From Selaginella moellendorffii (Eukaryota > Plantae > Lycopodiophyta): a DNA stretch of 64,000 nucleotides. A program made the translations under genes and the position numbers. Each line of letters begins with the position of its first letter. The stretch's first letter is position 1. Shown in pieces: positions 13,298 to 54,622 of the stretch. Below the pieces are notes generated by a model. The model was not told the DNA's origin and searched no databases. It was given only the letters and a program-made list of their open reading frames with translations. The stretch covers positions 434,001-498,000 of the forward strand of contig NW_003314290.1 of assembly GCF_000143415.4 (NCBI RefSeq). Direction: 5' to 3'.

Positions 13298-13398
13298 NNN
13301 NNNNNNNNNNNNNNNNNNNNNNNNNNNNNNNNNNNNNNNNNNNNNNNNNNNNNNNNNNNNNNNNNNNNNNNNNNNNNNNNNNNNNNNNNNNNNNNNNN
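13298..13398. other. Assembly gap
   Basis: Run of N. Confidence 1.
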
Positions 13399-16400: not shown

Positions 16401-17403
16401 CGCAAGTGGTATGCACTTCTGCGGATGAGAGGTACGCTGCAATGCTTCTCAATTGCGCGTTGGGGGGGCCGCTGTCCCTGATATTGAACACGCCGCTCTC
16501 GGAAGACTCTGCCCGGTTTATTGGTGCTTCTGTCGCCATGGCGATTGACTCTATGCATAAGGTACATTTTGGTTTCTTGTTGGAAATTCTTTTCCATTGA
16601 TTCATTGCTTCGAGTCCAGGATGGAGTTGTTTACCGTGGAGTATCTCCAGATATGCTTATGCTGGATAGAAAAGGACGACTACAGGTGACTAACTCTCCT
16701 CTCTTTTTCCTTGTGTATCTTACCAATTTATTTTCTGTCATGGTGACGTGCAGCTTGCTGATTTTCGGTTTGGCAAAAAGCTGTTAGACGAACGAGCTTA
16801 CACTATCTGCGGCATGGCTGATTTTCTCGCCCCCGAGATTATCAGAGGTCAAGGTCACGGCTTTGGTGCTGACTGGTAAGAACAAGCGTTGTTTTTTCAT
16901 GCTTTTTCTCGGCAAATGTGTATGATATTTCTTTCAGGTGGGCTTTGGGAGTGCTCTTGTATTACATGGTACAGAACGAGCTGCCGTTCGGATCGTGGCG
17001 AGACAGCGAGCTGGACATTTACAGCAAGATTGCCGGTAGGCAGCTAGTCTTCCCTTCCACTTTCAGCGGCGAACTCGTTGACTTGATCGACAAGGTATTC
17101 ATTGATTCATTTATTCCAAGCCCAGTAACTTCTTTGTGTTTATTTCTCCAGCTGCTGGTCGTGGACGTCTCCCAGAGGCTCGGCAGCCGAGGCATGGAGG
17201 AGATCAAGGCCCAGCCGTGGTTCGCCGGCCTCGACTGGGAGGCGCTGCTCGAGTGCCGCACGGACGTGCCTTTCGAGGTGTTAAGTCGGCTCCAGTCGGC
17301 ATTGAAGACGTCACGGGCGGACGACAGCCATCATCTGCTCATCAGTCCCTCGGCTACATCCGAAGAGTCGAGCACTGCGCCGCAGTGGCTGGAGAACTGG
17401 TAG
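13442..17403 (+). CDS. PP2C phosphatase + two cyclic-nucleotide-binding domains + AGC-type kinase (At2g20050-like), multi-exon
   Basis: MGCVC N-terminus (myristoylation/palmitoylation-like); [23 protein letters not shown]; [16 protein letters not shown] and YFGEWVL cNMP motifs; [31 protein letters not shown]; ends WLENW*. Confidence 0.93.
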
Positions 17404-17721: not shown

Positions 17722-17803
17722 GTGGATGTGCCGGAGTGGTTATCGGGCATGACTCGAAATCATGTGGGCTTTGCCCGCGCAGGTTCGAATCCTGCCATCC
17801 ACG
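17722..17803 (+). tRNA. tRNA-Ser(CGA)
   Basis: Acceptor GTGGATG/CATCCAC+G, anticodon arm CATGA-CTCGAAA-TCATG, long variable arm, GGTTCGAATCC T-loop, downstream T-run. Confidence 0.97.
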
Positions 17804-18173
17804 AGTTTGTGTTTTTCTAAACCATTATTTTGCTGGTGATCTCCCACTTTTATCTGTCAGAGACGAATTCAGCCCTTGCAACTTGCGAGCAAACACTTGC
17901 ATGCAGAGACAAATGCGTGTGGCCGCCGCGTGAGAGAGATCGAAAAAGTCAAAGGAATCGAACAAAGTCGTGTCGTATCGTATCATCGCCATGTACATCA
18001 AAGCTTGACAAAATATGATGCCCAAAAGCACAAGGGAAAAGAAGCTCTAGAAAGTAAAAGAGAGAGTTCTAAGGATTGGATCGCAGGTTGTGAGCACTCA
18101 ATCGTTTCCTCGTCCTCGCCACCCGTGCGTCGAGAGAAAAAAAGAGAGAAAAGAAAGAGGAAAAGAAGAAGGC

Positions 18174-18476
18174 TCAAGATCTTGCCTTTCGAAACCTGTT
18201 CTTGAGCCAGCTGAAAACACCGCCTCCCCTCGACGACGAAGACTTTGCCGAGGACTTTGCACTGGTGCGATGGTGGTGCTGACGGTGGCGATCGTCGTCG
18301 CTGTCCGGGGCCATGATCGTCTTCTTGGTGATCCCATCGCCCTTTCCGCCCCTGGTGTTGCTACTGCTAAATCTCTGCGCCGGCTCCACCGGGTTGTTAA
18401 GTCCAAGCGTGTCGGCCCAGCTCCGGCCTGACGATCCCTGCCTCCTGATCGACACCCCCCGGCTGAGAGAAGCCAT
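18174..18476 (-). CDS. Small basic protein with MASS-like N-terminal motif, copy 1
   Basis: MASLSRGVSIRRQGSSGRSWAD...GVFSWLKNRFRKARS*; intronless; paralogs at 33954, 36130 and 36884. Confidence 0.8.
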   Translation of the reverse strand: MASLSRGVSIRRQGSSGRSWADTLGLNNPVEPAQRFSSSNTRGGKGDGITKKTIMAPDSDDDRHRQHHHRTSAKSSAKSSSSRGGGVFSWLKNRFRKARS

Positions 18477-20379
18477 CACCGACGACGGCGACGTTGATTC
18501 CTGGTGGTGATCCACAGCTGCGTGGAGAGAATTCACTGCCTGAGGTGGCGTTGCGGTGGAGTCGAGTTCGTGATCTTGGTGCTGGCCTGCGAATGCGAAA
18601 GAAAACTCAGCAAAAGGATAAAATCAATCGCAACTCAAACTCCGAGGAAGAACAAACCGACCAGGAGAAAGCATTTCAATTCTCTCCCAGAAGCCAGTAA
18701 GCACAAGAAAAAGGGAGGGGGGGAAGAGAGAGAGAGAGAGAGGAAACAAAGAAGAAACCATACCTAGTAGATTCACTACGAACGCTGCTTCTCTCTCGGC
18801 AAAAAACGAAAGAACACCCAACTCCACAAAGGAGGAGAGAAATTTAAGCAAAGCACAAGGAGAGGAAGTCCCGCGGTCCCTGACAAGGAAAGAGAGGTCT
18901 GAGCCGCTGGAGCGCGAGTTAAATCGGCCCCACGGTACCGACAATCGCTGCCATCGCCGTTGCGTTGACGCACAGGACAAGACTTGCGCCCAAATCTAAA
19001 ACCCACCTCGTCGCGATCGATTGAATGCTCCCTTGCTCGTGTCTTGCCGCGGAGAAAGAATCAATCAACGCTCGCCGCGGTCGCGATTGCCTAAGAGGTA
19101 AAGTAGGTCTTTTGCCGCAGTAAACATGGTTAAAATTCCGAATTGTCGAGGAAAATGTAAAAGAAATATAATTAAAATAGAACCTAAGATAAAAAGTGGT
19201 TTAAGTTTTTCTTATAATAAATTATGTGAAGAGGCTAACCAAGTATTAAACATAGCAAAGGTGAATTATAAAGACTCTTGAATTTATCATTTTAGTGCAA
19301 GTATAGATGGATGCATGATGCTCATTTTGGAAACCATGGCAGAAATAGTTGACAGTAATATCGTAGCATGGCTATAATTTTAAGTGGTTTTTAATTAAAT
19401 TTTATAAAAGTAAGTGTAGCTAGTCTTTGGCTCTAATAATGGCTGAAACCAATTCACAATAAACACAATTTTGAAATTAGATTTTTATGACCATGATGAA
19501 TTTCTTTATGTAATTTGAGATTGACAATTGATTTATATATATATTTAATTAATTATAACTTTAATAAATGGTTTAATTTTTTAAAATTTACTACAAAATG
19601 TAAAACTTGTGATTCATTGTATTGGAGAGAACAATAGTAATTTTTAAAAATAATATTCTGTAAGCACAAATATATGGATAAAACCCTTCTTCTACAAAAT
19701 TATTTTTATGTTGTATATAACATTCCAAAAAGTAGAAATTTATAACATGACTAACTTTACTTATAAATATATATGATTGTATCAATTTTTTGGTTTGCTT
19801 AAACAAATCTGTAAGGGTAGTGGATATACCAAGAATATTCTTGGAAATTCTACGATATTCTACCATCTAAGGGTTGTTATTCATTTAGATTAATCTTGTG
19901 TTTATAAATTACAAACATGCTTATAATTATAAACTTTATTTCATCATTTGGATTAATAAGAAGGAATAACACCACTATTACGCAAACTAAGCATTGCTAC
20001 ATGCAACACGTAACAAATTATTAGTACTATAAATTAAATTATATAGTATTATTGTTAATTTTTTTTGTGACTATAAGATCAAAATATGAAAATTAAGATA
20101 CTAAATACTTATATAATAAAAAATATTTATCAAAAATAAAATTTTAATTTAATTTATATATTTTTATTTAATATAAATAATAGAGTGTGCTTAGCTAAGA
20201 ATAAATAAAAAAGAATAGGTTTCAATTGTTTTAGTAATAAATAAAAGAACAAAAACTAAATAAAACTTTATATTTAATTTTAAAGATAATCAAAATCTAA
20301 AATTTCATTATAATAAGATGTTAGTTTTACTACTTATATAAATTTTCCCGTGATAACTTAGTTTTTATCAAATATATAT

Positions 20380-20554
20380 TGTGAGTGCTTGGAATATGAA
20401 AAGGGAATATAGAAAATGTGCATATCAATTAGCCCAAAACCCTAGCTTATATACAGGAATAAGTGGTCCAGATTGAAACCAATCTGACAGCTACCAAAAT
20501 CTCATTATGATAATATTAGTATATGGCATTGTAGTTGTACACTTGGCCCTCACA
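20380..20554 (-). mobile_element. Solo LTR of the short-LTR Gypsy family (~175 bp)
   Basis: TGTGAG...CTCACA termini; ATAT on both sides (4-bp TSD); reverse complement of the copies at 20601, 33141 and 33514. Confidence 0.8.
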
Positions 20555-21249
20555 ATATCTATTACTTTGTAATATCAAAAATAATATTTTTATATACTAT
20601 TGTAAGGTGTATAATTACAATGCCGTATACTATTATTAGCATAATGGGATTTTGGTAGATGTCAAATTTGTTTCAATCCAAACCACTTGCTCTTGTATAT
20701 AAGCTAGGGTTTTTTGGCTAATTAATATATACATTTCTGTATTCTATTTTAATATTATACACTCACATTGGTGGAGATGAAGAGTAGTTGTGATTGTCTC
20801 TAAAAAATGCTTGGATTTGGAATTTTGTTTTAAATCTAGATTTTACATTGTCTAGATCTCCCTTTTCTTATAGCTTTTCTCAATTTTTATATTTTTTTTT
20901 TGTTCTTTCCTTTTTGTTCATCTTCATAGTAGAGTAGTAGCCTTCTCTTTCTTTGACTTTAGAGCAAAAACTGATGCAATTGCTTAATGCTATGTAGTTG
21001 CAGTTGAAGAATTAGACTTAGTTGATAGCAGCATATAATACAATGTTTTTTGCATTTACTACCAATCCTTGAGTCCGACTGGATGTTTTCTATAGGAATC
21101 ATAGGGATGATGTGTACCATTGGTTCAATCACTTCATAATGATTCCCATATATCATTCTTGGGATGATGTTTAGCATTTGTGTGAATTTTCCATATGTCT
21201 TCAAAAGATAGCACTACAATGGTATAATGGTTTGAGCATAGCCACTCCT

Positions 21250-21395
21250 AAAGATTGAAGCATTCTCCTAGATGTTTTCAAATGCACATTTGGACATGCT
21301 AACAATTCCGATAATGCCCTCTTAAAGATTGGAGCATTTTCTTAAATGTTTTCAAATGCATATTTGGACATGCCAACAATTCTGATGATGCTTTC
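21250..21395. repeat. Imperfect ~75-bp tandem duplication
   Basis: aaagattg(a/g)agcatt...atgttttcaaatgca(c/t)atttggacatgc(t/c)aacaattc occurs twice. Confidence 0.7.
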
Positions 21396-22635
21396 CAATA
21401 ATTATATTGTCTTCGTCAAAGGTTATGCAATTTGGCATTCTGTTTCAAAGGCTTTTACTTTGTGTAGAGTCAAATATGTTAAAATGGATCAAGTTGGGAA
21501 TGTTATACTTATCACTTTGTCAAAATCATGTACGACTTATGTATGCATTTGGTCCAGCCACCCTTGACAATGTTGTTCGTTTAACACAATGCTATGAGAC
21601 ATTTGTAAGTGACTAAATTTTTCCATTTTACTTTAGTCACTTAACCACACCTCCGACCACTTGGAGGAGTCTCACTCACAACCTTCTTAAGTCCAATTCA
21701 GGACTTGGGACTTGCTAGTCCCAAGAATGGCATCCATGCCACTCCTCCCTTGCACTTGGTCCAAGTGCTCCACGTGTCTAGTCCCAAGACCGATACCCAA
21801 AGGTACCACTGACATATTGGCCTGTTACGCTAAGGCCATGCCCATTCACCTTTGCCGCACTGGTGGGTCCAATACCACTTGCATCACCATCTCGTCTCTC
21901 CAAGACTAGGCCATCTATCCACAAGTGATTATCCCAGATCCACTCCTTAGCATCCTTAGGATGCCCACAGACATGGGGAATAGCCTTCCCCAACATCCCT
22001 TTGTCAGTTCCTGCCAAGTCCCTTTTCCGTCAATGGCCATGTTCACCAACACTGCCACTAGATCAAGGCCCGCAGGCCCGGCCACTAAGTCCCATTGTCC
22101 TCTGGGACTTCCTCACCATGTGACCGTATCCATAGTAACTACACTAGAGGATTGCTCCTCCTCCTTTCCCCCATTTGGGACTTCGGGACAACATTTTGGA
22201 ACACCGTGGCCCTACGTGAGCTCCGTGGGTACTCTCCCCACCTTCCGCCTTTAGGTGCTCTAGCCATGGGCTTAGAGCGAGGTTCCGTTGAGCCACACCA
22301 GGTATCCAAGTAGGTAGTGCCACCCACACTTGGACTGGGAGCATCGGCCAGTCGATCTCCCGGGGGAACTAGAGCCGGCTCTTGAACACTTCACCAAGCT
22401 ACCCTGCTTGTCAGTCCGTATTCACTCTAGTCTTGGACTTCCCAGTGGTCAATTCATCACCCAACACTGGGTCTGGCCTTCCTGGGCCAAACTGGCCTTT
22501 CCTGGCCAAACTGGCCTTTCCTGGCCAAACTGGCTCCACTGCAGTCCTCCCCCTTACTATACTTTTGGAGCTCACCAAACCCCTCAGGGTCTAGGAGACG
22601 AACGCTTTGGGCTTTCACCCTCTTAGACTCGAACA

Positions 22636-23212
22636 TGGACTCGGATTTGGACTTGGACTCGGACTCGGACTCGGGCTCGGGCTCGGTCTCGGCCTCGGCC
22701 TCGGTCTCGGTCTCGGTCCCAATCTCGGTCTCGATCTCAGTCCCGGTCTTGGTCCCGGTCTCGGTCTCGACTTCGGACTCCATCTTGGGTCCATCTCGGA
22801 CTCCACCTCGGGTCCATCTCGGACTCCATCTCGGGTCCATCTCGGACTCCACCTCAGGTCCATCTCGGACTCCACCTCGGGTCCATCTCAGACTCCATCT
22901 CGGACTCCACCTCGGGTCCATCTCGGACTCCACCTCGGGTCCATCTCGGACTCCATCTCGGGTCCATCTCGGGTCCATCTCGGACTCCATCTCGGATCCA
23001 TCTCGGACTCCATCTCGGGTCCATTTCGGACTCCATCTCGGACTCCATCTCGAGTCCGTTTCGGGTCCATCTCGGACTCTGTCTCGGGTCCGTCTCGGAC
23101 TCAATCTCGGATCCATCTCGGGTCCACCTCGGACTCCACCTCGGACTCCATCTCGGGGTCCTCTCGGACTCCACTTCGGACTCCAACTCAAGTCCATCTC
23201 GGGTCCATCTCG
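22636..23212. repeat. Hexamer (ctcgga/ctcggt) plus 11/12-mer (ccatctcggact/ccatctcgggt) tandem array inside the LTR
   Basis: Directly visible; equivalent arrays at about 28894-29172 (inverted) and 30190-30760. Confidence 0.95.
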
Positions 23213-26200
23213 AACACTTCCACGTGTCATGTATTGGTCCTTTTGGGTCCCTTTTTGGATCCTCGCTTATTGCTCGCTTCGTGCTCATTCCTTGAGCACT
23301 TCGTTGGGAGTTCCACTCCCACTCTCGACCTTTTCAAGTCGGAGCTTTTAGTCCAAATGTGTTACGCTCGTTTGGCTTTCACTTCGGCCACTACCACGTG
23401 GCACCCTTTCGGCTCCACTTTTGGGCCTAGGGATTTTGTGTCTCACAACTCCACCACTCATAGATGAAGTTCGATGTCCTCATCGAACGATAAACTATTT
23501 TATAAAGTAATACCAACTTGTATTACCATTTCCATCTTTGGCCCCTCGCCAATATTCGTCAATGGTCTGATATTGAAGGCTCATCATGCCTTCCCCATCC
23601 TCTAAGGAGTGTAGTCTCTCCAACTTAAAGACTGATTGGACCACTTGTGGTGGTTCTCTCCTTTTTACTGGTTTAGTTCTCACTAAACTTGTTAGAGACA
23701 CCTTCTCTAACTCAATCCCACTACTCATTCTCGAATGGTCTCACTTTCCATCAATATAACCCTTTGCACTTTGGAACCTTTTAATTTTGACTTCTCAGAG
23801 TCAATTTCCTAGGTGTTTAGGCACCATCATCCTCTCTTCAATATCGTGCCACCCTTGGCACTAAGTTCTAGCTATCGTAATTCGTGCTAGGGTTGTCCAT
23901 GGCCCTATCATTTGGCTACTTTACCACTCCATCCCTTGGAGCTTCCCCCTTCGCCAAATCGGAGCAATTGGGAATCTATCCTTGGAAACACATTGCTTTC
24001 TAATAATCTGTTAGCATCCAACACATTAGTGTTCTTGGACTAACTTTGCCATTTGACTTCTATCCCATGATTCCCGTGGCCCTTTTCTTAGCCACTAGTT
24101 TTTTGCTCCTATCCTTGATTGTTGCACCACGCAACACAGGATCGTCACCTCCATTCTCGAGGTATTCTTTCAATTCCATAGTAAAGACTTTGCTTTGCCA
24201 AGTCCAAAGGGTATTCACCCCTAGTACGTCTCCTTAGCATTTTCTGCTATGGGCTCTATTATGGCCCAACTTTGAGACCCTCCGATAGATCTTTTATAAA
24301 GACTACTTTCGTCGGACTTATTATGCCATCGCATTGACAACTCATTTCCCTTAGGTGTTCCTCCCACTTGGTCACCTTGACCAAGCCACACCATCATCAA
24401 TAGTTCTAATCAACACTTTAAATTTGGAACTTTATCCCTTAACCTCACAAGGACCTTGTCCTTGTTTTAGCCATAAGATCACATAGTGATCTAACCTTGG
24501 CACCTTAACAGGTTTGCCAATACATACTAGGTCTTCCAGACCTTTAAGTTGTTCACTATGACCCCAGGGGCATCCCCCACACTTGGCGGTGCACCCAAGC
24601 CAGCCCTTTCGGCCAAGGGTCCATAACAACTGAGACTAGGTGTCCCCGTCTCATTCACCACGACCTTGGTGCCACTTGGACCAAAGTGTTCAAATTAGAT
24701 ATGCTGAGCTTTCACACTAAGCAATCCAACCGTGTATCACGACTCCGAGGCATCCCTCGTTTGGCGGTGTGCCCAAATCAATCTCTCCACTGAGAGTCCA
24801 TGACCACCGAAATATGAGTGTCCTCATATTCCAAACCATCACCACGCCCTAGTGATTTGGGACTCGAACCCAAGCACTAGAGGGTCGGAACTCGAACCCA
24901 ACCTCTGTATATGCATCTACGGATGGCATCACACCGGATGCCTGGCGTGACTCCCCACACCGGTGCACCAACTTATATTCAAAGCGCGCTACAGATCACA
25001 ACTTAGGAACCTAGTTCCCCCGCACTGCCAAGTCCTCTCACTTGACAAGTCTGTGATCATGCATGGACTCCTCCATGCTCGGCCCCATGGCCCACCCTTT
25101 TTGAAGTTATCACCTTCAACTAGGGCATTTGTTCCCCCGACTTGCCAATCTCTTAGCAAGTCCTCCGACCACTGTAATATAGTTCCTGCATAAGCGTGAA
25201 AGTTCTTGGCCATCGGCTTTCGTTCAAAGCCCTCTTTTTGAACACTTGGGGACTACTTCCCTAACCTTGATAGCTTTGCCTCACGGCAAGCTTCAAAACC
25301 GCGCTTCTGCTGCGCCACTTTGATTTCGTGCATTTCATGAACCATTTACACTTGGCCTTTCTAGGTACTAAGCTACCTAGAATCGTCTTTAGAAACCTTG
25401 AAGCAACTTTGTCCCTTAGCTTGCTAAGGCCTCCCTTTTCGCAAGCTTTATAGTTGCCATATAGTCTAACATGGACAATTCCATATTTTAGACTCTCCAT
25501 GGCATCACAGTTGTTAGCAACAACATCCTCAAACACCCTCTTGATTCTCCACTCCCAACTTGCATAACCACCGTTGGATATGCCCTTCGATTTCTATGGT
25601 TCAATTCCATCCCAATACTACTTGCCTTTTGGCCCTATATGTTTCCTTTGGTTATTCTCCTCAAGACTAGGAGGATAGCTTTGCACATTTTACTATGCCT
25701 TAGCAAGTATTCTTAGGGATGAACCTACCCGATAACCTAGGGAGTGGTTCCTCAATCTTGGGCATGCTCACCTTATAATCCCACACATTGGGACTAATGT
25801 TGCTGCTTTTGGGCCTTTACATGCCCATCACTAGCCTTGCCAGAATTCCATTTTTGGCTTTGTCTAATTTGGGTAGACAGTCTTCTCCTATCTCCACAAC
25901 CTTGGACATCTGGATAACATCTACTATCCATCATTTGCTAGGGACTTAGTCCTTTGGGCCTTATCTATTGCCCTTGCGACACGAAACACCACCTCCTGGT
26001 GTTTTAGAGTGTTTGGGTGTCCCAATAATGGCCTCCTGACAATGAGCATTCCCGTTTACGACATTGACTTACTATATCACAACATAAGCAATTTATCCCC
26101 CGTAAGGGTATATTTAACTTCCTTATGCCATTAAGAAGTCTTGGGTAGCTACCTTCTACCCATTTAACCAATTATCTTGCACCTCTCGCTTAGTTGCCCC

Positions 26201-28361
26201 ATAGTTGTCAAGTCCTACAACTCATTGCTTGGTGCTTCCACACCTCCATCATTATCTGGGTCACCACACTCCAACTGCATGCCTTCCAGCTTAGGCCATG
26301 CCATTCCCACTTCCGTTGGGATTCCCTTGGCAAGGGGTTCTTATGAACCCACCATCATAACCTCCAGGTATTACACCTTGGCACATTTGGTGTCTCCACA
26401 CTATCGGCCCCACGAGCCTACCTTCATGACACTACTTATTAGTGTCTAGGTCTTTGCCAAGACCAATATAGTTATTCCTCATGCTAACTATCCGTTAGCA
26501 CCGCAACATAGAGTTCATACACAACTTTGTGTCAAAGTTGTTTTTCTTCCAGGAAACTCTTTCCCATGACTTTAGCATGGCACCTTCTGCCATCAATGAG
26601 ATACATACTGCTCTCATGATTATTCCTTGACTCTATTGGAGTCATTCAACCTTTTTGACTTTGTTAATCCGACGACCTATGACGTCCTACTTTTGAGGTG
26701 CTAACTCACTGGAATACAACTCCTTGTATTCATGTCCTACTCACAAGGACCATCTTTTGCAAGTGTTACTTCGACACTTGATTTGTTCTCTAGGGGCAAC
26801 CTTTCGCCCCTTAGGACCACTTGTCCATGTGATGAGAATACCAACTCATCCTCTAAATACACCCCCAACTCCTTGGGTTGTTCCAGCATTTATTAGAGGT
26901 AGCTCCGGCTACCATTTCAAGGACTTGTGTCCTTTTCTGTATTTGACCTCCTGCGGTCATTACTTTTGGTCTCAAATTCATGAGCACCAGCCTCAACTTC
27001 ATGAGGGTAATCTTGTGACTCCTTTATTGTTTTGGAGTCTGCATCTTGCCCGTGATCCTAACGATAGTTGTTTATTACAACTACATTAGCCCGTTTGCTG
27101 CATCAAACACTCATCTGGATCACATCCTCAACTCTCTGAGGAAACCCTTACACTGTTCCCAAGATCCCAAAGTCGTTCCATTATTGGCCCTTTTCTATCC
27201 ACCATGTTGTCTACAAGCTCACACATGAACTGTAATGGAGAGCCATGTCTTCCCGACCTGCTACTCCTCAAGGATAGGCCCACTCCTCGGACCTTTTGAT
27301 GCCAACACCAGTGGTGATATACTTGAGCACCAATAAAAGTTGGACTAAGGAACAGTTCCGATACCAAGTTGTAAGTGACTAAATTTTTCCATTTTACTTT
27401 AGTCACTTAACCGCACCTCCGACCACTTGGAGGAGTCTCACTCACAACCTCCTTAAGTCCAATTCAGGACTTGGGACTTGCTAGTCCCAAGAATGGCATC
27501 CATGCCACTCCTCCCTTGCACTTGATCCAAGTGCTCCACGTGTCTAGTCCCAAGACCGACACCCAAAGGTACCACTGACATATTGGCCCGTTATGCTAAG
27601 GCCATGCCCATTCACCTTTGCCGCACTGGTGGTCCAATACCACTTGCATCACCATCTTGTCTCTCCAAGACTGGGCCATCTATCCACGAGTGATTATCCC
27701 AGATCCACTCCTTAGCATCCTTAGGATGCCCACAGACATGGGGAATAGCCTTCCCCAACATCCCTTTGTCAATTTCTGCCAAGTCCCTTTTCCGTCAATA
27801 GCCATGTTCACCAACACTGCCACTAGATCAAGGCCCGCAGGCCCGGCCACTAAGTCCCATTGTCCTCTGGGACTTCCTCACCATGTGACCGTATCCATAG
27901 TAACTACACTAGAGGACTGCTCCTCCTCCTTTCCCCCATTTGGGACTTCGGGACAACATTTTGGAACACCGTGGCCCTATGTGAGCCCCGTGGGTACTCT
28001 CCCCACCTTCCGCCTTTAGGTGCTCTAGCCATGGGCTTAGAGCGAAGTTCCGTTGAGCCACACCAGGTATCCAAGTAGGTAGTGCCACCCACACTTGGAC
28101 TGGGAGCATCGGCCAGTCGATCTCCCGGGGGAACTAGAGCCAGCTCTTGAACACTTCACCAAGCTACTCTGCTTGTCGGTCCATATTCACTCTAGTCTTG
28201 GACTTCCCAATGGTCAATTCATCACCCAACACTAGGTCTGGCCTTCCTGGGCCAAACTGGCCTTTCCTGGCCAAACTGGCTCCACTGCAGTCCTCCCCCT
28301 TACTATACTTTTGGAGCTCACCAAACCCCCCAGGGTCTGGGAGACGAACGCTTTGGGCTTT

Positions 28362-30175
28362 TGTGAGACACAAAATCCCTAGGCCCCAAAGTGGAGCCGG
28401 AAGGGCGCCACATGGTAGTGGCCGAAGCGAGAGCCAAACGAGCGTAACACGTTTGGACCAAAAGCTCCGACTTGAAAAGTCAAGAGCGGGAGTGGAACTC
28501 CCAACGAAGTGCTCGAGGAACGAGCACGAAGCGAGCAAAAGGCAAGGCTCCAAAAAGGGACCCAAAAGGACCAACACATGACACATGGGAGTGTCCGNNN
28601 NNNNNNNNNNNNNNNNNNNNNNNNNNNNNNNNNNNNNNNNNNNNNNNNNNNNNNNNNNNNNNNNNNNNNNNNNNNNNNNNNNNNNNNNNNNNNNNNNNNN
28701 NNNNNNNNNNNNNNNNNNNNNNNNNNNNNNNNNNNNNNNNNNNNNNNNNNNNNNNNNNNNNNNNNNNNNNNNNNNNNNNNNNNNNNNNNNNNNNNNNNNN
28801 NNNNNNNNNNNNNNNNNNNNNNNNNNNNNNNNNNNNNNNNNNNNNNNNNNNNNNNNNNNNNNNNNNNNNNNNNNNNNNNNNNNNNNNNNNNNNAGTCCGA
28901 GATGGAGTCCGAGATGGAGTCCGAGATGGAGTCCGAGATGGACCCGAGATGGAGTCCGAGATGGAGTCCGAGATGGACCCGAGATGGACCCGAGATGGAG
29001 TCCGAGATGGAGTCCGAGATGGAGTCCGAAGTCAAGACCGAGACCGGGACCGAGACCGAGACTGAGACTGAGACCGAGATCGGGACCGAGACCGAGACCG
29101 AGGCCGAGGCCGAGACCGAGCCCGAGCCCGAGTCCGAGTCCGAGTCCGAGTCCGAGTCCAAGTCCGAGTCCGGAGCCTGAGAGGGTGAAAGCCCAAAGCG
29201 TTCGTCTCCCAGACCCTGGGGGGTTTGGTGAGCTCCAAAAGTATAGTAGGGGGAGGACTGCAGTGGAGCCAGTTTGGCCAGGAAGGGCCAGTTTGGCCCA
29301 GGAAGGCCGGACCCAGTGTTGGGTGATGAGCTGCCCACTGGGAAGTCCAAGACTAGAGTGAACACAGACCGACAAGCGGGGTAGCTTGGTGAAGTGTTCA
29401 AGAGCCGGCTCTAGTTCCCCCGGGAGATCGACTGGCCGATGCTCCCAGTCCAAGTGTGGGTGGCACTACCTACTTGGATACCTGGTGTGGCTCAACGGAA
29501 CCCGCTCTAAGCCCATGGCTAGAGCACCCAAGGGCAGAAGACGAGGAGAGTACCCAGGTGGCTCGCGTAAGGCCACGGTGTTCCGAAATGTTGTCCCAAA
29601 GGCCCAGACTGTAGAAAGGAAGAGGAGCAGTCCTCTAGGGTAGTGACCAAGGACACAGTCGTGTGGTGAGGAAGTCCCAGAGGACCGTGGGACTTAGTGG
29701 TCGGGCCTGTGGGTCTCGATCCAGTGGCAGTGTTGGCAAACACGGCCAGGGGCAGAAAGGGACTTAGTGGGGACTGACAGAGGGATATTGGGGAAGGCTA
29801 TTCCCCCTGTCGGTGGGCACCCTAAGGATGCTAAGGAGTGGATCTGAGATGACCACTCACGGAAGGTTTGTCTAGTCTTGGAGAGCCAAGACGGTGATGC
29901 AAGTGGTATTGGACTACCAGTGTGGCAAAGGTGATTGGGCATAGCCTTAGCGTAACGGGCTGCTATGTCGGTGGTACCTTTGAGCGTCGGTCATGGGATC
30001 GGACACGTGGAGCACTTGGACCAAGTGCAAATGTTGAGTGGCATGGATGCCATTCTCGGGGCTAGCAAGTCCCAAGTCCTGGGTTGGACTTATGGAGGTT
30101 GCGAATGAGACTCCTCCAAGTGGTCAGAGGTGTGGTTAAGTGACTAAAGTAGAATGGAAAATTTAGTCGCTTACA
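28362..30175 (+). mobile_element. Same-family LTR inserted in opposite orientation into the host LTR (solo LTR, or collapsed across the gap)
   Basis: Starts TGTGAGACA, ends GCTTACA; perfect 5-bp TSD GCTTT at 28357-28361 and 30176-30180; host LTR resumes at 30181. Confidence 0.88.
28598..28893. other. Assembly gap
   Basis: Run of N at the LTR tandem array. Confidence 1.
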
Positions 30176-31547
30176 GCTTTCACCCTCTTAGACTCGAACT
30201 TGGACTCGGATTCGGACTCGAATTCGGACTCGGACTCAGACTCGGACTCGGACTCGGTCTCGGCCTCGGCCTCGGTCTCGGCCTCGGTCTCGGTCTCGGT
30301 CCCGGTCTTGGTCCCGGTCTTGGTCCCGGTCTCAATCTCGACTTCGAACTCCATCTCGACTTCGAACTCCATCTCGGGTCCATCTCGGACTCCACCTCAG
30401 ACTCCATCTCGGGTCCATCTCGGACTCCATCTCGGACTCCATCTCGGACTCCATCTCAGGTCCATCTCGGACTCCACCTCGGGTCCATCTCGGACTCCAC
30501 CTCAGGTCCATCTCGGACTCCATCTCGGGTCCATCTCAGACTCCATCTCGGACTCCACCTCGGGTCCATCTCGGACTCCATCTCGGGTCCGTTTTGGGTC
30601 CATCTCGGACTCCGTCTCGGGTCCGTCTCGGACTCAATCTCGAATCCATCTTGGGTCCACCTCGAACTTCACCTCGGACTCCAACCTCGGACTCCATCTC
30701 GGGGTCCTCTCGGACTCCACTTCGGACTCCAACGCAAGTCCATCTCGGGTCCATCTCGAACACTTCCACGTGTCATGTATTAGTCCTTTTGGGTCCCTTT
30801 TTGGATCCTCGCTTATTGCTCGCTTCATACTCATTCCTCGAGCACTTCGTTGGGAGTTCCACTCCCACTCTCAACCTTTTCAAGTCGGAGCTTTTAGTCC
30901 AAACGTGTTACGCTCGTTTGGCTTTCACTTCGGCCACTACCACATGGCACCCTTTCGGCTCCACTTTTGAGCCTAGGGATTTTGTGTCTCACAATATTGC
31001 ATTTTCCACTTTTTGTTGCACATCCTTTAGCTCCACTTCCTATAGAAGATATATATGCCACAAATTTTTCCTTTCTAATTTACTAACTTACTTTATTTAT
31101 CTGACCACCACGGCCTTGGTGTTCATCAAATTCCCTTGTCAAAGTTCCCACATATTGTACCAGTTCTTACTTGGTCCTATGTGGTTTTAACAACTCACTA
31201 CACAAGCAATAGAGCGTTAATCATCCATCCATGGATTCCTAAATTCTCTCTTAATCCCCCTCCTTAGGTTAGACTAAATTTAAGGTTCAATTACACTCCC
31301 CACAAATACACCAAACTTCCAAGTTCCTAACATCCTTTGGTATAACAAGGCTTGATCATGGGACTCTCTAAATCCCAAGCCTTGGGTGCAACACTTGCTT
31401 TAGGACACTAGGGGAAACACTATGGCTTAATGGCCCAATATAGATACTCCTACTCCCCCACTTCTATCCCGAAGGGAAAGCCCAATCCCTTAGGAAGGGC
31501 AAAGACTAATGAGCCGTAAGATACTCAAGTGGGGCACCACTCTACAT

Positions 31548-32010
31548 GAGTTGGGAGCACCACAGTCAGTTTCCCTTCCAAGAGTAGATGTTGCTTTTGA
31601 ACACTTCCTTAAGTGGCCCCTCTAGCACCACTTGAGTCCATCCTCACTCCCACCCAATGCCCCTAAGCCCCAATTTCAACCTCAAGTCAATTTGAAAGCA
31701 CCATTGGAGAGTTTCTTCGAGACTAATTCTTGGACTTCACTATCCCTACTATATTTTTGGAACCCCTTGCAGCCCCTCCCCCCTTGGGAGATACAGGCTT
31801 TGTGCTTTCACCCCATGATCTGTATTAGTATTCGAACTCGATCTTGGACTCAGTTTTGAACCCAATTTCGCATCTCAGACTCAGTCTCGAATTTGGTCTT
31901 GGACTCAGTCTTAAATTTGGTCTTAGAGTTGGTTTTGGACTCGATCTCGGACTTAGTCTGTAACTAAGTCTTATAATCGGTCTTGGACTTAATCTTGGAT
32001 TTGGTCTCAT
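31548..32010. mobile_element. Highly diverged relative of the long LTR
   Basis: Blocks tgggagca..., ttgaacacttc, ctactatatttttgga, ctttg(t/g)gctttcaccc followed by an eroded hexamer array, in the same order as 22330-22780. Confidence 0.6.
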
Positions 32011-32214
32011 CCGATGAACTTTTTAACATTTCGGTCGTGCTTTTTAGAGATTTTTTAACCTACGACACATTGGGGAGTTGGTTGTTTATAGCAATGTGAT
32101 ATTATCTGGTATGTGCATAATTATGTTTGGTGCTAAGCTCATAATACTCCCCCTTGTGCTACAAAAGGATGGATAGAGTTAATTGTAGTTTCCTATTCAT
32201 TTAAGTTGGTGGCA

Positions 32215-32920
32215 TTTGATTGGATGGAGCATTTTTCACAATCAACTACTGGCAATGAGTATATTATTATTGCTTATAACTATTTAACTCATAGGGTGGA
32301 AGTATGTGCTTTTATTAACATGTTTGCAACTACTATTGGATACTTCCTTCTCAATTGAGTAAAATTCCTATTTAGATAATGATCCCGCATTTATAGCTAA
32401 AGCATTTTATGTTTTGACATCTTGGTTGGGGATACACCACACTTTCACAAGTGGTTATCATCCATAATCAAACAGTTTGATGAAATGACTTGTTTGGACC
32501 TTCAAAAGGATGATTGTGAAATACATAAATTTTCAATATTCAAATTGGGATGGTTATTTTGCATCTCTTCGGTGTATATATGTCATAGGGGTGTAGAGTT
32601 TTATTGATGCTTTACCATATAAACTCCTATATGATTATAATCCAATACTACCAATAGAGTTGGGTTTACCTTTATGATTGTTATGAGTTACCAATGCTAA
32701 GTCATGATTAATATTTGAGAAATATTTTTCCACTTGTCCAAATAGAGTTTGCCGAACACTTAGGTTGTATACAAGTGGAATAACAACGACACTATAACTA
32801 TTGTCCACATGTAGAGTACAAAATGGATGATTTGGTATTAGTTTATTTTCTGAATCTTACAATATATATTTATTTAAAAGGCTTTTTGCTCAGTGGAAAG
32901 GACCATATTGAGTGTTGCGG
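32215..32920 (+). pseudogene. Gypsy integrase remnant
   Basis: Fragments DWMEHFSQSTTGNEYIIIAYNYLTHRVEV, LDNDPAFI, PYKLLYDYNPILPIE and WKGPY (GPY/F motif), interrupted by stops. Confidence 0.7.
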
Positions 32921-33513
32921 CAAATTGGACTACCAGTTTATGAGGTTTGGCATGACATCTAACAAGCTAATCCTCTAGAATTATACATGTGCAACAAGAG
33001 AAATGTTTTATACAAAGAAATTAGGAATAATTGGCACCACTTATAGATACACCAATACCTCCTCCTAATGTCTTTTAAAATCTCAACCCATCCAGAAAAG
33101 AATCTTGATGGTCTTTCATTATTCCAAGACGAAGTGATGATGTATAGTTCAAATATATAGCTACAATGCTATATACTAATATTCATATAGTGGGATTTTG
33201 GTGGTTATTGGATTTGTTTCAATTTGGACCACTCCCTTTTATATATAAGTTAAGGTTTTTGGGTTAATTAATATACACATTTCTGTATTCCATTTCCATA
33301 TTCCATGCACTCACACCATCTTTATAATTATAATGTTAGTATGTCAACATTTAAGAAATAATTTTGATGAGTTATATTATATTTGATTCTTATATAAAGC
33401 AAATAAAAAAATTTATTTATCATAGTATATATAATTTTACTTATGTCTTTGTATTTTACCAATTATTAATCCTGTATAGGTTATATTATATTTGAGTCTT
33501 CTAAAAATAATAA

Positions 33514-33688
33514 TGTGAGGGCCAAGTGTACGGTTACGATGCCGTATACTAATATTAGCGTAGTGGGATTTTGGTAGCCATCATATTGGTTTCAATGCGG
33601 ACCACTCGCTCCTGTATATAAACTAGGGTTTTTGGGCTAATTGAAATGCACATTTCTGTATTCCTGTTCCATATTCCATGCACTCACA
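33514..33688 (+). mobile_element. Solo LTR of the short-LTR Gypsy family
   Basis: TGTGAG...CTCACA termini; ATAA on both sides (4-bp TSD). Confidence 0.8.
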
Positions 33689-33953
33689 ATAACAAATTTT
33701 ACTTATTATAACACATATAATTTTATATATCTTTTTGCATTTTAGCAATTATTAATCCTGTATAAACATCAATCTTCACATATAACATTTTAAACTAAAA
33801 GGATATAAAATATTGACTTTAAATGTTTTCATATGAAAACTTCCTTTTGATTATAAAAAATGAAAAAATAATAAATCTTGCCAAAATGGTATAATTTGGC
33901 TTGGCAAGTTACATTTCCTTGTATCAAGGAAGAAAAGGAAGATGAAGAATCTC

Positions 33954-34304
33954 TCAAAATCTCGCCCTTCGAAACCTGTTCTTGAGCCAACCGATTACAC
34001 CACCACCCCTGGACAACGAACAAGACGAAGACTTTCGCCGCTGCTCCTCCCTGTGGCTGCCACTCCTGTTCATCACCGTCGAAGACTTTGCACTGCTGCG
34101 ATGGTGGTGGCCTTGGTGATCGTCGTCGCTGTCCAGAACCATGATCGTCTTCTTTGTGATCCCATCGCCCTTGCCGCCCCTGGTGTTGCTACTGCTAAAT
34201 CTCTGCGCCGGCTCCACCGCGTTGTTGAGGCCCAGCGAGTCGGCCCAGCTCCGCCCCGACGATCCCTGCCTCCTGATCGACACCCCCCGGCTGAGAGAAG
34301 CCAT
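33954..34304 (-). CDS. MASS-like small protein, copy 2
   Basis: MASLSRGVSIRRQGSSGRSWADS...GVIGWLKNRFRRARF*; close paralog of 18174-18476. Confidence 0.8.
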   Translation of the reverse strand: MASLSRGVSIRRQGSSGRSWADSLGLNNAVEPAQRFSSSNTRGGKGDGITKKTIMVLDSDDDHQGHHHRSSAKSSTVMNRSGSHREEQRRKSSSCSLSRGGGVIGWLKNRFRRARF

Positions 34305-35006
34305 TGATGGACGTCGATTGGTGGTGAATGGTTCTTCTTACGATGTTGTTGCGGTCGTGATCTTGGCGGTGATGGTACTGCCCTGCGAATCCGATTAAAG
34401 TAAAGCCAGATTCACGAGAAAACAGAAGGAACACAAAGCCGATCACATTTCATGTTTTCTACGAAGAAATGAGTTCTCTCCAAGAAGCCAGTTTAGATCA
34501 CAAGAGAGGAAGTGGAGTCTAGGAGACAACAGAGAAAACGTGTAAAAACAAACTTCTATCACTGGAACGCATCCAACACAGAGAGCTAAACGAACACTCC
34601 CACGGTACCTGACAGTGAAAGCAAATCCTGAGCGCGAATTTAAATCGGCACAATCGCTGCCATCGCCGCTGCCAGACTAGAAGACACACATCGGGATAAT
34701 TTCCTCTATACTGGAACTTCAGGCATAGAACCCTATTTTCTCGACCCAGAAAGCCGCCACCGCCACCGCGCTAGCTCGAATCCTCGCTTGTCGCTCGCCG
34801 CAAAGCAAGAGAGGCATTCTATAGATTGCCGCAAAGCAAGAGAGGCTAGTCTAGATTTAAGGGCATTGTCCTCGCTGTTGCGCGTAAGTCCCGGTCTAAA
34901 GCGACTGGGTGTTGCGTTGCATGTCAAACACCATTGTCGATGGCGGGCTTGTCGTGGAGCTATGCTGACTTGCAAGGTGAACGCATTGAGGAAGGTGGGA
35001 CGCAAT

Positions 35007-35088
35007 GTGGATGTGCCGGAGTGGTTATCGGGCATGACTCGAAATCATGTGGGCTCTGCCCGCGCAGGTTCGAATCCTGCCATCCACG
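35007..35088 (+). tRNA. tRNA-Ser(CGA)
   Basis: Same as the 17722 copy except one variable-loop base (gggctctgccc). Confidence 0.97.
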
Positions 35089-35395
35089 TATATCTTGCCA
35101 TTCCCTTTTTTTTGCTCCAATTGTTGCTTCTTCCATGTCCCTTGCTAGTGGCAATGGCCTGCGAGCTTGGTTTCGTTCTTCCTGGTGTTTTCTTTCGCGT
35201 TCTACAGCATGGAGTCTAATCAAAGCAAAGATCATGAGTGTTTACGTGGGCGATTCATGAAGAGAAGCGGGAAATCTTCGCGATCGTCTTGCCTCCACCA
35301 CCATCGCGAAGTCCTCGGTTTCTTCACTGGGAAGAGGTGGTGCCTTGAGAGTGGTCTACGATTTTGATGTCTTTCTTTTCAGATTCTAATGTGTT

Positions 35396-35673
35396 CTACA
35401 ATTTAGACGCTTTTCTCGAAGAGATTCTTCCTTTGAGCCAGCCAAGAACACGAGACTTCTAGCCTCCAGCACCTCGCAATGCACCATCCTGCGTGCTCCA
35501 TGGCGAAAGCATGGCTGGATCCTCACCATTCGTGATATCCGAGAGTCGCCCCCGCGGCTTGATTGATCCTGGAGTTTTTGTGGAACATCCCTTGCTCTGT
35601 AAACGTCCAGATCTTTGCCGGAAGATCCGAACATCCCTGCCTTCGACACGAGCCCCTCTCTTGAGCGTCGCCG
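35396..35673 (-). pseudogene. MASS-like pseudogene
   Basis: ATG lost and frameshift before RRQG, but ATLKRG, WTFTEQGMFH and LGWLKGRISSRKASK remain, matching 36884-37222. Confidence 0.75.
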
Positions 35674-35847
35674 AATTCCAACAAGAAATTGTGTCAAAAG
35701 CGATGAGATTCTAACCCCGCGAGAAACGATTGAGTTTCTATCGGAGGATCTACCGCTTGACTTAATCACGTCAATCGTTTGACCAGATCGTAAACTACGG
35801 CCACGAGATATCTTCACAATGTCTGTTGCCACGTCAAATCTTGCAAG

Positions 35848-35912
35848 GCCAGAGTGGTTATCGGGCAATCATGCGAGCTTCGCTCGCGCAGGTTCGAATC
35901 GTGCCATTCACG
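35848..35912 (+). pseudogene. tRNA-Ser-derived element lacking the anticodon loop
   Basis: gagtggttatcgggca-atcatgcgagcttcgctcgcgcaggttcgaatcgtgccattcacg: 9-nt deletion removes the anticodon, and the 5' acceptor strand is lost. Confidence 0.85.
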
Positions 35913-36129
35913 GAAGGAAGCTGTTTTGTTGACCTTGTTTTTACTGGCATGTGAGGCGTCTTGTTTGGCTTGCCAGGCTTTTGTCGACCAAATGCTGGAG
36001 AATCTTCCAACCATCCAGTCTAGCACGAACACACATTTGTATTTACATGGATTTGATTTTACTCTCTGATAGCAACATGGTACTTGTGAAGATCACTCCA
36101 AGAGCTCCACAAGCGAAAAGATCTCTGAT

Positions 36130-36477
36130 CTAAGTTCTAGAGATCTTTCTCATCCTCCCCTTGATCCAGCCAAGAACACCGTGATGAGATCTCTGGTGGA
36201 GATCGGTGGCGCCACCATCGAAGTCCCCTGGCGATCCCAACGCCGCCGATGCTCCTCCGGCCCCATGAGATCCTCCTCCAGTGCCGGACGAGCTGTGGTT
36301 GAGAGTGGAGGGATGAGACGAGGTCTCGTGATTGATGATCTCGCCGCCTTGTGCCCCGGATCCCAGCGCCCGAGACGTCTGGAACATCCCTTCCTCCGTG
36401 AATGCGCAGTTCTCGGCCCAGCTCAACCCCGACGATCCTTGCCTCCGGAAAGACACCCCTCGCTTGAGCGTCGCCAT
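36130..36477 (-). CDS. MASS-like small protein, copy 3
   Basis: MATLKRGVSFRRQGSSGLSWAENCAFTEEGMF...GVLGWIKGRMRKISRT*. Confidence 0.8.
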   Translation of the reverse strand: MATLKRGVSFRRQGSSGLSWAENCAFTEEGMFQTSRALGSGAQGGEIINHETSSHPSTLNHSSSGTGGGSHGAGGASAALGSPGDFDGGATDLHQRSHHGVLGWIKGRMRKISRT

Positions 36478-36719
36478 GGAAGACCCAAAGCAAAATAGCC
36501 ACGAGAATGCTATAGTACAATGTAGATATTGATGAGATCGAACTAAGATCAAGCTAGGGACAGAGATCGGAAAGCCATGAGTACAACAATGAAACAAAGA
36601 TCTTGTCTTCTTTTATAGCAAAACCATGTATTGACGGTCAATGAAAGTATATTCGATATGTTCGTAAAGTTAACCTAGTGGGAGTAAAATGTGTTTGTGC
36701 ATGTAGTTGACTGCAAGTT

Positions 36720-36801
36720 GTGGATGTGCCGGAGTGGTTATCGGGCATGACTCGAAATCATGTGGGCTTTGCCCGCGCAGGTTCGAATCCTGCCATCCAC
36801 G
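36720..36801 (+). tRNA. tRNA-Ser(CGA)
   Basis: Same sequence as the 17722 copy; T-run terminator follows immediately. Confidence 0.97.
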
Positions 36802-36883
36802 TTTTTCATTTTTTCTGCTTTGTATTTCTTCGATCTTGCTAAATTTTTTCATCTTTTTGATTCTAACGTTCCCGCAATGTGTT

Positions 36884-37222
36884 CTACGATTTAGATGCCT
36901 TTCTCGAAGAGATTCTTCCCTTGAGCCAGCCAAGAATGCTCCGGGATCGCGATTTCTGGCCTCCAGCGCCATCGCAATCCACCATCGCGTCCGCGCTGCG
37001 AAATTGGAGATGCTTCATCGATCCTCCCCCGTGGCCAGTGCTAGCGCTGCGACCAAGCGTGGCAGGATGCTCACGATTTGTGATCATCTGATCGCCCCTC
37101 GCAATTGCAGCTTTGGATTGATTGTGGAACATCCCCTCCTCTGTAAACGTCCAGTTCTCCGCCCAGCTCAATCCCGAAGATCCCTGCCTCCGAAACGAGA
37201 CGCCTCTCTTGAGCGTCGCCAT
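36884..37222 (-). CDS. MASS-like small protein, copy 4
   Basis: MATLKRGVSFRRQGSSGLSWAENWTFTEEGMF...LGRSAST...ILGWLKGRISSRKASKS*. Confidence 0.8.
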   Translation of the reverse strand: MATLKRGVSFRRQGSSGLSWAENWTFTEEGMFHNQSKAAIARGDQMITNREHPATLGRSASTGHGGGSMKHLQFRSADAMVDCDGAGGQKSRSRSILGWLKGRISSRKASKS

Positions 37223-37700: not shown

Positions 37701-37772
37701 GTCGTTGTAGTATAGTGGTGAGTATTTCCGCCTGTCACGCGGACGACCCGGGTTCGATCCCCGGCAACGGCG
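37701..37772 (+). tRNA. tRNA-Asp(GTC)
   Basis: GTCGTTGTAGTATAGTGGTGAGTA...CTGTCAC...GGTTCGATCCCCGGCAACGGCG, the canonical plant tRNA-Asp pattern; T-run follows. Confidence 0.96.
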
Positions 37773-52957: not shown

Positions 52958-54622
52958 ATGCGGAGGATCTTCCCGGGAAAGAATTCGGCAAAGGATGATA
53001 GGATTCTCCCCGGCAGAAAGGATGATCTCGCCAGGGTCAAGCAGCCAATGAGGAAGGAGAGGTCTCCCGCCGCCTCGGCTGCCAACGCCGCCGCCGCCGC
53101 CGCCGCTCTGTCGGCCCCGGATAGCAAGAACCAAGAAAGCCTGAGGCGGTCGTCAATCAGCGATCGAAACCGGCGCACGCATTGGTGCCCGTCGTGCCCG
53201 TCGGGTCCATCGGAGGAGGCAGAGAGGTGTGACACTCCTCCCAGCGGCGATGAGAACGTTTCATTCACGAGGGATGGTCCCAGCTCCGAGGAAGCCATGT
53301 CCCAGTTCCGGCTTGGGCTGCCAGAGGAGTGCCAGGACAAGCAGATTCTGCGGCCATCTATCAACGCGGCTCCTTCGCCCGAGCCGTGCGAGTGGACGAG
53401 TGGCTTACAGGCGGCTCTGGATCAGCTGGTCGTGGAGAGCAGGCAAGAGCTGCGATCAAAGTACGTGAGCGAGCCCCCGAGCCCGGCAACATCGCCTCCT
53501 TCGATTGCTATGCTGGAGAACTTGTCCTCTACGTCGTCGGATGTATCGCAGTCGGTGGACTTGGTGTCGCACTCGGTGGACTTACCCAGGCCGAAGTTCT
53601 CGAGATCGCTTTCTCGTTCCTCCAACGACGGCGCGTCGATCATGTCGAATCCTCGGTCGCACTCCTTCAGCGATTGGTCGTCCAGAGGTACCGTGGTTAC
53701 GACCACCAGTGACAAGGCTCAGGTGAGGTATCTCAGCGCTCGAGCTGTGGCCGAGAGGCTGGCCAAGGCGATCCGGGGGAACACTTCCAAGACGAAGGAG
53801 CTTTCAAAGCGTTTGCTCCCGCCAGTTCCTCAGACTCCACCTCGGAGTTCCGAGTCCATCGCCAGTCACAGCGCGAGCAAAGGTGGTGGTGGTGGAAACG
53901 GGAAGCAGATCATCGAGGGCCTCCAGCAGAGCTTGAGTGACATGACGCACGCCTTGAACACGCAAAACAGCCGGATCCAGCGGCTGACTGGCAGAAACGA
54001 GGAGCTTTTCAGGCTCTACCGTGGGAAGGAGAAGGAGCTGACGGAGCTGCAAACTAGAGTGAAAGACGAGGACGCCCGAAAGCGGGCAAGGGAGGAGGAA
54101 CTTAAGCAGGTAAGCAACAGCGGTCTTGGAGTTTTTTCTTTCCTTTCTAACATCTTTGCACAGGTCAAGGACAAGCTCAAGTACGTCCAGGAGAAATTCC
54201 ACGCGCAAAGCAGCGCCCAGAGCGAAGCGTCTCGCTTGCGAAGGCTGCTGGAGAGTGCCACGGACAGGATCTCCGAGCTGGAGCTCCAGGTAACGAATCA
54301 ATCCATGTTGTGGGATGTGATTCTTACAAAACTGCCTTTGCTCCAGGTGAAAGAGAGGGGTCAGAAGGTGGGATCGCTGGAGGTGGAGCTCAGGCACGCG
54401 CTGCAAGAGTTGAATCGGTACAGGGAGGAGATGCCGCGGGTGATCCGGCAGCGCGAGGGGATGAAAAGGGAGGCCGAGCAGCTGGGGCACGAAGCGCTCC
54501 GGATGAGCGCCGAGGCGGAGGTGTTGAAGCGGAGGGTCCACGAACTGGAGGAGGAAGTGATGATCCGAGATGGCCACCTCTCCATCCTCAGGAATAGTCT
54601 CAATAACAACTACGACTGCTAA
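52958..54622 (+). CDS. Unknown protein: Ser/Pro-rich N-terminus and C-terminal coiled coil; probably two short in-frame introns
   Basis: 554-codon ORF with a heptad-rich E/K/R/L C-half; GT..AG segments near 54110-54163 and 54289-54346. Confidence 0.75.
   Translation: MRRIFPGKNSAKDDRILPGRKDDLARVKQPMRKERSPAASAANAAAAAAALSAPDSKNQESLRRSSISDRNRRTHWCPSCPSGPSEEAERCDTPPSGDENVSFTRDGPSSEEAMSQFRLGLPEECQDKQILRPSINAAPSPEPCEWTSGLQAALDQLVVESRQELRSKYVSEPPSPATSPPSIAMLENLSSTSSDVSQSVDLVSHSVDLPRPKFSRSLSRSSNDGASIMSNPRSHSFSDWSSRGTVVTTTSDKAQVRYLSARAVAERLAKAIRGNTSKTKELSKRLLPPVPQTPPRSSESIASHSASKGGGGGNGKQIIEGLQQSLSDMTHALNTQNSRIQRLTGRNEELFRLYRGKEKELTELQTRVKDEDARKRAREEELKQVSNSGLGVFSFLSNIFAQVKDKLKYVQEKFHAQSSAQSEASRLRRLLESATDRISELELQVTNQSMLWDVILTKLPLLQVKERGQKVGSLEVELRHALQELNRYREEMPRVIRQREGMKREAEQLGHEALRMSAEAEVLKRRVHELEEEVMIRDGHLSILRNSLNNNYDC

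Follow-up and report, generated by a model that had tools for sequence, protein, structure and literature searches.

Serine tRNA genes facing MASS-like genes in Selaginella moellendorffii: a tandem array best explained by co-duplication of neighbours

Why does a serine tRNA gene stand beside a small protein-coding gene, unit after unit, in the genome of a lycophyte? The question is raised by a stretch of 64,000 nucleotides of Selaginella moellendorffii (NCBI RefSeq assembly GCF_000143415.4, contig NW_003314290.1, positions 434,001 to 498,000 of the forward strand; hereafter the window, with positions counted from its first letter), in which tRNA-Ser(CGA) genes face genes for MASS-like proteins (DUF4666 family) on the opposite strand. 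An earlier note on this DNA had read the arrangement as a paired module of RNA polymerase III (Pol III) and RNA polymerase II (Pol II) genes. Tandem co-duplication of adjacent genes that are selected separately is the best explanation and most probably the right one; it fits every test run.

The four tRNA/MASS-like units that the earlier note had described were found again, ARAGORN, Rfam and the open reading frames (ORFs) agreeing with its description, together with a fifth protein copy lacking a tRNA. From unit A to unit E, the elements are:

17722-17803, plus strand: intact tRNA-Ser(CGA) gene of unit A (ARAGORN; Rfam, 60.6 bits), T5 terminator 9 nt downstream.
18476 to 18174, minus strand: gene A, intact intronless S-type MASS-like (DUF4666-related) ORF of 100 aa, stop codon 370 nt from the tRNA.
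34304 to 33954, minus strand: gene B, intact intronless S-type MASS-like ORF of 116 aa, without tRNA.
35007-35088, plus strand: intact tRNA-Ser(CGA) gene of unit C (ARAGORN; Rfam, 60.6 bits), T8 terminator 18 nt downstream.
About 35748 to 35388, minus strand: T-type MASS-like pseudogene C, start codon and reading frame lost, 66.5% identity to E, 299 nt from the tRNA.
35848-35912, plus strand: dead tRNA-Ser relic of unit D, found by sequence comparison with the intact copies.
36477 to 36130, minus strand: gene D, intact T-type MASS-like ORF of 115 aa, Pfam DUF4666 26.4 bits, stop codon 217 nt from the relic.
36720-36801, plus strand: intact tRNA-Ser(CGA) gene of unit E (ARAGORN; Rfam, 60.6 bits), T5 terminator immediately downstream.
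37222 to 36884, minus strand: gene E, intact T-type MASS-like ORF of 112 aa, Pfam DUF4666 31.6 bits, stop codon 82 nt from the tRNA.

One orientation is common to all five units, with tRNAs on the plus and genes on the minus strand, and the tRNA starts in units C, D and E are spaced 841 and 872 bp apart in a strictly head-to-tail order, so placed that the tRNA of the next unit lies upstream of each array gene (e.g. tRNA E, divergent, at 242 bp from the ATG of gene D). The units are alike in length, orientation and homologous content, as is expected of a tandem array made by local duplication. Units A and B are homologous, at 69% identity, over 18151-18747 and 33930-34539, a span that takes in about 270 bp before the ATG, the coding sequence and 23 bp after the stop codon; past 33930, the 3' flank of unit B is AT-rich repeat DNA, and tRNA B has therefore been deleted or displaced, in line with the earlier description of a fifth protein copy bordered by AT-rich sequence, which starts 23 bp past its stop codon. 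The repetition of the units is the outcome of common descent of duplicated DNA, not of chance. An assembly artefact was considered and rejected, the copies being too diverged.

The course of events would have been simple. An ancestral stretch of about 0.85 kb would by chance have held a small MASS-like gene convergent with a tRNA-Ser(CGA) gene, and several rounds of tandem duplication within the lineage of Selaginella, for which unequal crossing-over is the probable mechanism, would have produced the five head-to-tail units, each copy holding both genes because, as the layout suggests, the duplicated segment contained both. On this view, there is nothing unusual about the tRNA genes as Pol III units or about the ORFs as small Pol II genes, and whatever interaction they have would be at most a by-product of tight packing. 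Tandem duplication of tRNA genes is well documented in plants (PMC7544208, PMC13437025, PMC13578239).

How far each partner has been maintained on its own account is best seen from the tRNA genes. Copies A and E are identical, and a single base in the variable-arm loop sets copy C apart from them, which bears out the earlier statement that the three intact tRNAs differ by at most one base. All three have what a functional tRNA-Ser(CGA) gene should have: a full cloverleaf, a long variable arm, the CGA anticodon and a T-run terminator, runs of at least five T being found 1-18 nt past each gene. The relic in unit D has none of these features: a 9-nt deletion takes out the anticodon, the 5' acceptor arm has diverged, identity to the intact copies is down to 78%, and the element is invisible to Rfam even at E<=5. 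A sensitive Rfam scan of the window found no additional tRNA relic, and none for unit B. Amid diverged units, the 99-100% identity of the three tRNAs shows that selection has kept them as working tRNA genes; neither recent copying nor a special tie to the MASS-like gene can be read from it. The tRNA bodies would be nearly alike because they are selected as working tRNAs, held so by tRNA function after the duplications, and their likeness is therefore uninformative on the pairing. Three working tRNA-Ser(CGA) genes at one locus may nonetheless be a large share of the genome's supply.

Outside the tRNA body and the coding sequence, no similarity between units is left. The spacers between stop codon and tRNA align no better than shuffled sequences (z = -0.5 to -0.9), and the identity of the tRNAs stops 3-15 bp from their borders. 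Synonymous divergence (dS) between genes A and B is 0.32-0.42; between D and E it is about 1.8, the proportion of synonymous differences (pS) being saturated at 0.68. Judged by this divergence, the units are old. The coding sequences bear a different mark. Between A and B there are 18 synonymous and 14 nonsynonymous differences, with pS of 0.26, a nonsynonymous proportion (pN) of 0.061 and pN/pS of 0.23 (Fisher p = 1.8e-5); between D and E, where the middle of the alignment is uncertain, pS of 0.68 stands against pN of 0.34 (p = 3e-7). All indels among the ORFs are in frame. These figures show purifying selection on the intact pairs A-B and D-E. Under separate selection following the duplications, the protein genes would have retained only their N- and C-terminal motifs, and the non-coding DNA of the units would have drifted past alignment.

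The two partners have also decayed separately. Gene C is dead beside a perfect tRNA C, the ORF of gene D is intact beside a dead tRNA D, and the ORF of gene B is intact with its tRNA missing and its 3' flank replaced, so that one partner is lost or dead and the other intact in three of the five units; the earlier observation that the gene had decayed in one unit and the tRNA in the next is thus upheld by pseudogene C and relic D. Gene C, tRNA D and tRNA B would each have been lost independently. From an obligate module one would expect the reverse of what is seen, namely independent loss of partners together with ORFs under purifying selection. The proposed Pol III/Pol II module finds no support in these results: the spacers are unconserved, the partners decay independently, and a tandem duplication of about 0.85 kb yields the pairing automatically.

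All four window ORFs begin with M-A-x-L-x-R-G-x-S-x-R-R-Q-G-S-S-G-x-S-W and end in a basic W-[LI]-K-x-R tail; across these ORFs and their moss, fern and lycophyte homologues, positions M1, A2, L4, R6, G7, S9, R11-G17 and W20 are invariant. The gathering score of Pfam DUF4666 (PF15697), 24 bits, is passed by D and E with the scores given above, and A and B (15.3 and 15.9 bits) fall below it with both end motifs present; they are placed in the family because they are homologous to D/E and to family members. MASS proteins are defined by an N-terminal domain, a C-terminal K/R motif and a P-P-S-P phosphorylation site for mitogen-activated protein kinases (MAPKs) (Xue et al. 2020, PMC7156110), and plasma-membrane localization of MASS2 needs the N-terminal domain, i.e. 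the first ~29 aa (PMC7156110). The P-P-S-P motif is absent from all four window translations, which are therefore MASS-like and not typical MASS proteins of the kind known from flowering plants. The earlier MASS-like assignment, made from the N-terminal motif, stands, with the DUF4666 matches of D and E added to it.

A single-sequence word search with ORF E retrieved one paralogue only, and a profile of five sequences reached family members in Sphagnum, Ceratopteris, Adiantum and Diphasiastrum, as well as one annotated Selaginella paralogue located outside the window (P0001/P0003, XP_024521828/XP_024528283). The four window ORFs have no exact match in the public protein collection and are not among its relatives of 62-196 aa, although longer fused gene models may hold them; the four intact MASS-like genes appear to be unannotated. 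In the gene tree, from which P0005 (a read-through) and P0007 (a partial model) were left out, A+B and D+E form sister pairs with support of 100/100 and 95/91, respectively, in agreement with the two protein subtypes recognized earlier. No order is supported among A+B, D+E, P0001 and Diphasiastrum, and the tree leaves undecided whether the split between S-type and T-type came before or after the divergence of lycophytes. A very long stem leads to the S-type copies, a sign of fast change after duplication and of constraint thereafter.

With the family alignment, metagenome contigs were scanned for homologous genes, giving 22 loci from mosses and a few other plants; flanks of 10 kb on both sides are present at several of them, and more than 400 bp follow the stop codon at nearly all. 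Three Sphagnum-like paralogue groups are among them, with proteins 94-100% identical to P0004, P0009 or P0012, and each locus has a single copy of the family gene. ARAGORN found no tRNA at any of the 22 loci, Rfam none at the 20 scanned (L013 and L016 were omitted as duplicates of L012 and L015), and blastn no match to the Selaginella tRNAs. The convergent linkage is thus absent from these mosses and few other plants, an outcome that the earlier note had itself named among those speaking against its reading. The peat-moss-associated contigs among them (L001-L016, moss nuclear DNA in contigs reaching 58 kb) carry three MASS-like paralogues, and such moss metagenome contigs are a usable stand-in for plant genome context.

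Several points weigh against passive co-duplication as the whole story. The keeping of a working tRNA in three of five diverged units shows that the tRNAs matter, be it at this locus or in general; with a spacer of 82 nt, it is plausible that the 3' end of the MASS-like mRNA overlaps the antisense tRNA in unit E; pairwise pN/pS for genes B and D is a mixture of selection before and after the loss of their tRNAs; and the sample of 22 loci holds neither lycophytes nor the P0001/P0003 locus, so that a selected linkage restricted to one lineage may be compatible with it. As found, the pairing is one more tandem duplication carrying a neighbouring gene along, and as such it matters little.

Among the rival explanations, one would have the tRNA genes (tDNAs) act on Pol II as roadblocks that terminate transcription, or as insulators: the TFIIIB/TFIIIC-Pol III complexes on them would stop convergent read-through and shield the next promoter, and the pair would be kept by selection. 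Barrier and insulator activity of tDNAs is established in yeast and human (as cited in PMC13578239 and PMC13437025), the packing of the array is very tight (82 nt from stop codon to tRNA in unit E and 242 bp from the ATG of gene D to tRNA E), and the T-run terminators on all three intact tRNAs make them complete-looking Pol III units. The explanation is, however, unlikely, given that genes B and D are intact without a live tRNA, in pairs with pN/pS well below 1, that spacer length varies more than 4-fold and spacer sequence is not conserved, and that homologous genes at the 22 loci have no tRNA beside them. From the sequence evidence, neither dependence of the neighbouring gene on the tRNA nor pairing across species, either of which would mark a tDNA insulator or roadblock, is seen at this locus. 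That lycophytes co-opted tRNA-Ser(CGA) genes as compact roadblocks, with MASS-like genes packed at 0.85-kb spacing and the pairing selected at independent loci, is quite improbable; if true, plants would have their first example of a tDNA boundary element linked to one particular gene family.

In a second explanation, which is compatible with co-duplication, the near-identical, direct 82-bp tRNA bodies act as recombination anchors and drive, or once drove, expansion and contraction of the array by unequal crossing-over. Apart from the tRNA, the units share no stretch of at least 80 bp with 99-100% identity, and the tRNAs lie in direct orientation at ~0.85-kb spacing. Such a role is improbable: the units, old and with divergence at saturation, bear no sign of recent exchange, the identity stops at the tRNA borders, unlike that of a recent crossover or conversion tract, the first duplication could not have used tRNA repeats, and 82 bp is short for efficient homologous exchange.

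Coupling at the RNA level, with a 3' untranslated region of the mRNA carrying tRNA-related sequence as a mobility signal, an antisense regulator or a source of small RNAs, has in its favour that dicistronic tRNA-mRNA transcripts are reported to be most numerous in S. moellendorffii (23 tRNAs and 49 transcripts, the highest numbers among nine plants; PMC8166872) and that, across the 82-nt spacer of unit E, a transcript could conceivably run on into the tRNA. In grapevine, a tRNA-Ser-CGA located 222 bp from VIT_06s0004g07100 has been reported to be co-transcribed with it (PMC8166872, supplementary file 15); no paper was found on VIT_06s0004g07100 or through a literature search for 'DUF4666'. The tRNA and the gene are, however, on opposite strands in every unit, and the mRNA can hold no sense tRNA-like structure; the same-strand arrangement of a dicistronic tRNA-mRNA is found in none, and a sense dicistronic transcript was accordingly rejected. 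Furthermore, the spacers in A, C and D measure 217-370 nt, and the Selaginella list in the supplement of PMC8166872 has no Ser-CGA entry, its pipeline covering annotated genes only and the window ORFs being unannotated. We regard RNA coupling as highly improbable.

An origin from mobile elements, the tRNA-like parts being pieces of a short interspersed nuclear element (SINE) or Helitron that carried the gene along, is barely credible and was rejected: repeats do occupy the site of unit B's tRNA, but the three tRNAs are genuine, full-length cloverleaves scoring 60.6 bits with proper terminators, nothing beyond the tRNA body is shared between units that could be an element body or termini, and the units are strictly tandem, not dispersed.

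Later repeat insertions would have moved unit A some 15 kb away from units B-E in the tandemly duplicated array. The interval that now splits it is:

18537-33929, no strand assigned: repeat-rich interval, 15.4 kb from A to B, holding direct and inverted repeats, units like miniature inverted-repeat transposable elements (MITE-like units) and an assembly gap.

Direct repeats of 1.0 kb at 21603-22615 and 27369-28361 share 95.7% identity and lie 5.8 kb apart; the DNA between them has no gag-pol ORF, which suggests a non-autonomous element of the long terminal repeat type. A repeat family of about 1.85 kb is found at 21603-23448, 27366-28597 and 28894-30994 in direct and inverted copies; its internal hexamer-type microsatellite translates as GLGLGL or SDSDSD. 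The AT-rich MITE-like units at 20377-20767 and 33150-33691 each consist of an inverted pair of ~160-210 bp, with ~80% identity between the two sites, and one such unit occupies the site expected for the tRNA of unit B. The assembly gap at 28598-28893 (296 N) lies inside an inverted repeat copy and touches no cassette. In self-comparison, its left flank (28361-28597) is the reverse complement of 23448-23211, within the full repeat copy 21603-23448, and its right flank (28894-30175) that of 22906-21604, the missing piece of the repeat being 304 bp against the 296 N written. The flanks are thus collinear within one inverted repeat copy, which makes the joining of A to B-E credible; the reading frame across the gap is irrelevant, because the gap sits in non-coding, microsatellite-rich repeat DNA. 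A second gap of 101 N (13298-13398) lies outside the array.

Some neighbours of the array deserve mention. A further tRNA gene stands just outside the repeated unit:

37701-37772, plus strand: tRNA-Asp(GTC) (ARAGORN and Rfam), 478 bp upstream of gene E.

On the other side, an exon-like ORF at 16918-17403 (plus strand), which by eye resembles the C-terminal part of a protein kinase domain, ends ~300 bp before tRNA A and shows the gene density of the locus. The ORF at 52958-54619 (plus strand) corresponds to S. moellendorffii LOC9650557, to which it is identical in 513 of 516 positions once two in-frame mini-introns of 54 and 57 nt, which it reads without interruption, are set aside; the match places the window in this species, and the window may represent the other haplotype of the annotated scaffold. 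Four long ORFs of the window had no exact match in the public protein collection.

When set beside known systems, the array resembles the Ser-Tyr-Tyr and Pro tRNA clusters of Arabidopsis (PMC7544208, PMC12308677, PMC13437025), with which it shares short head-to-tail units, local duplication and tRNA bodies that are alike; it differs in consisting of five old, diverged units, each with a Pol II protein-coding gene. With the tDNA insulators of yeast and human (Donze & Kamakaka; Raab et al. 2012, as cited in PMC13437025) it has in common intact tRNAs between close Pol II genes, whereas the window genes persist without the tRNA and the position is not conserved in other plants. The dicistronic tRNA-mRNA transcripts of vascular plants (PMC8166872) likewise involve Selaginella tRNAs that have a protein-coding gene no more than a few hundred bp away, but the window tRNAs are on the opposite strand, and Ser-CGA is not listed for Selaginella.

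As for the proteins, the window ORFs are similar to Arabidopsis MASS1-3 (At1g80180, At1g15400 and At5g20100; DUF4666) in their small size, in being encoded by intronless genes, as are MASS1 and MASS3, and in the M-A-x-L-x-R-G-x-S-[FI]-R-R-Q-G-S-S-G N-terminus, the basic C-terminus and the DUF4666 match; they differ from them in having no P-P-S-P MAPK site, and the S-type copies A and B depart from the MASS/MASS-L family as a whole in falling under the Pfam cut-off and in their very long branch. 'MASS-L' proteins with the N-terminus only, a class that the window ORFs fit, have been described from early land plants, S. moellendorffii being credited with a single such gene, again with the N-terminal domain only (Xue et al. 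2020, PMC7156110). Against this count of one, the window adds four intact ORFs: S. moellendorffii has at least four intact MASS-like genes under purifying selection and one pseudogene, all apparently missing from public annotation, and the account given so far of how this MAPK-substrate family evolved in early vascular plants needs correction.

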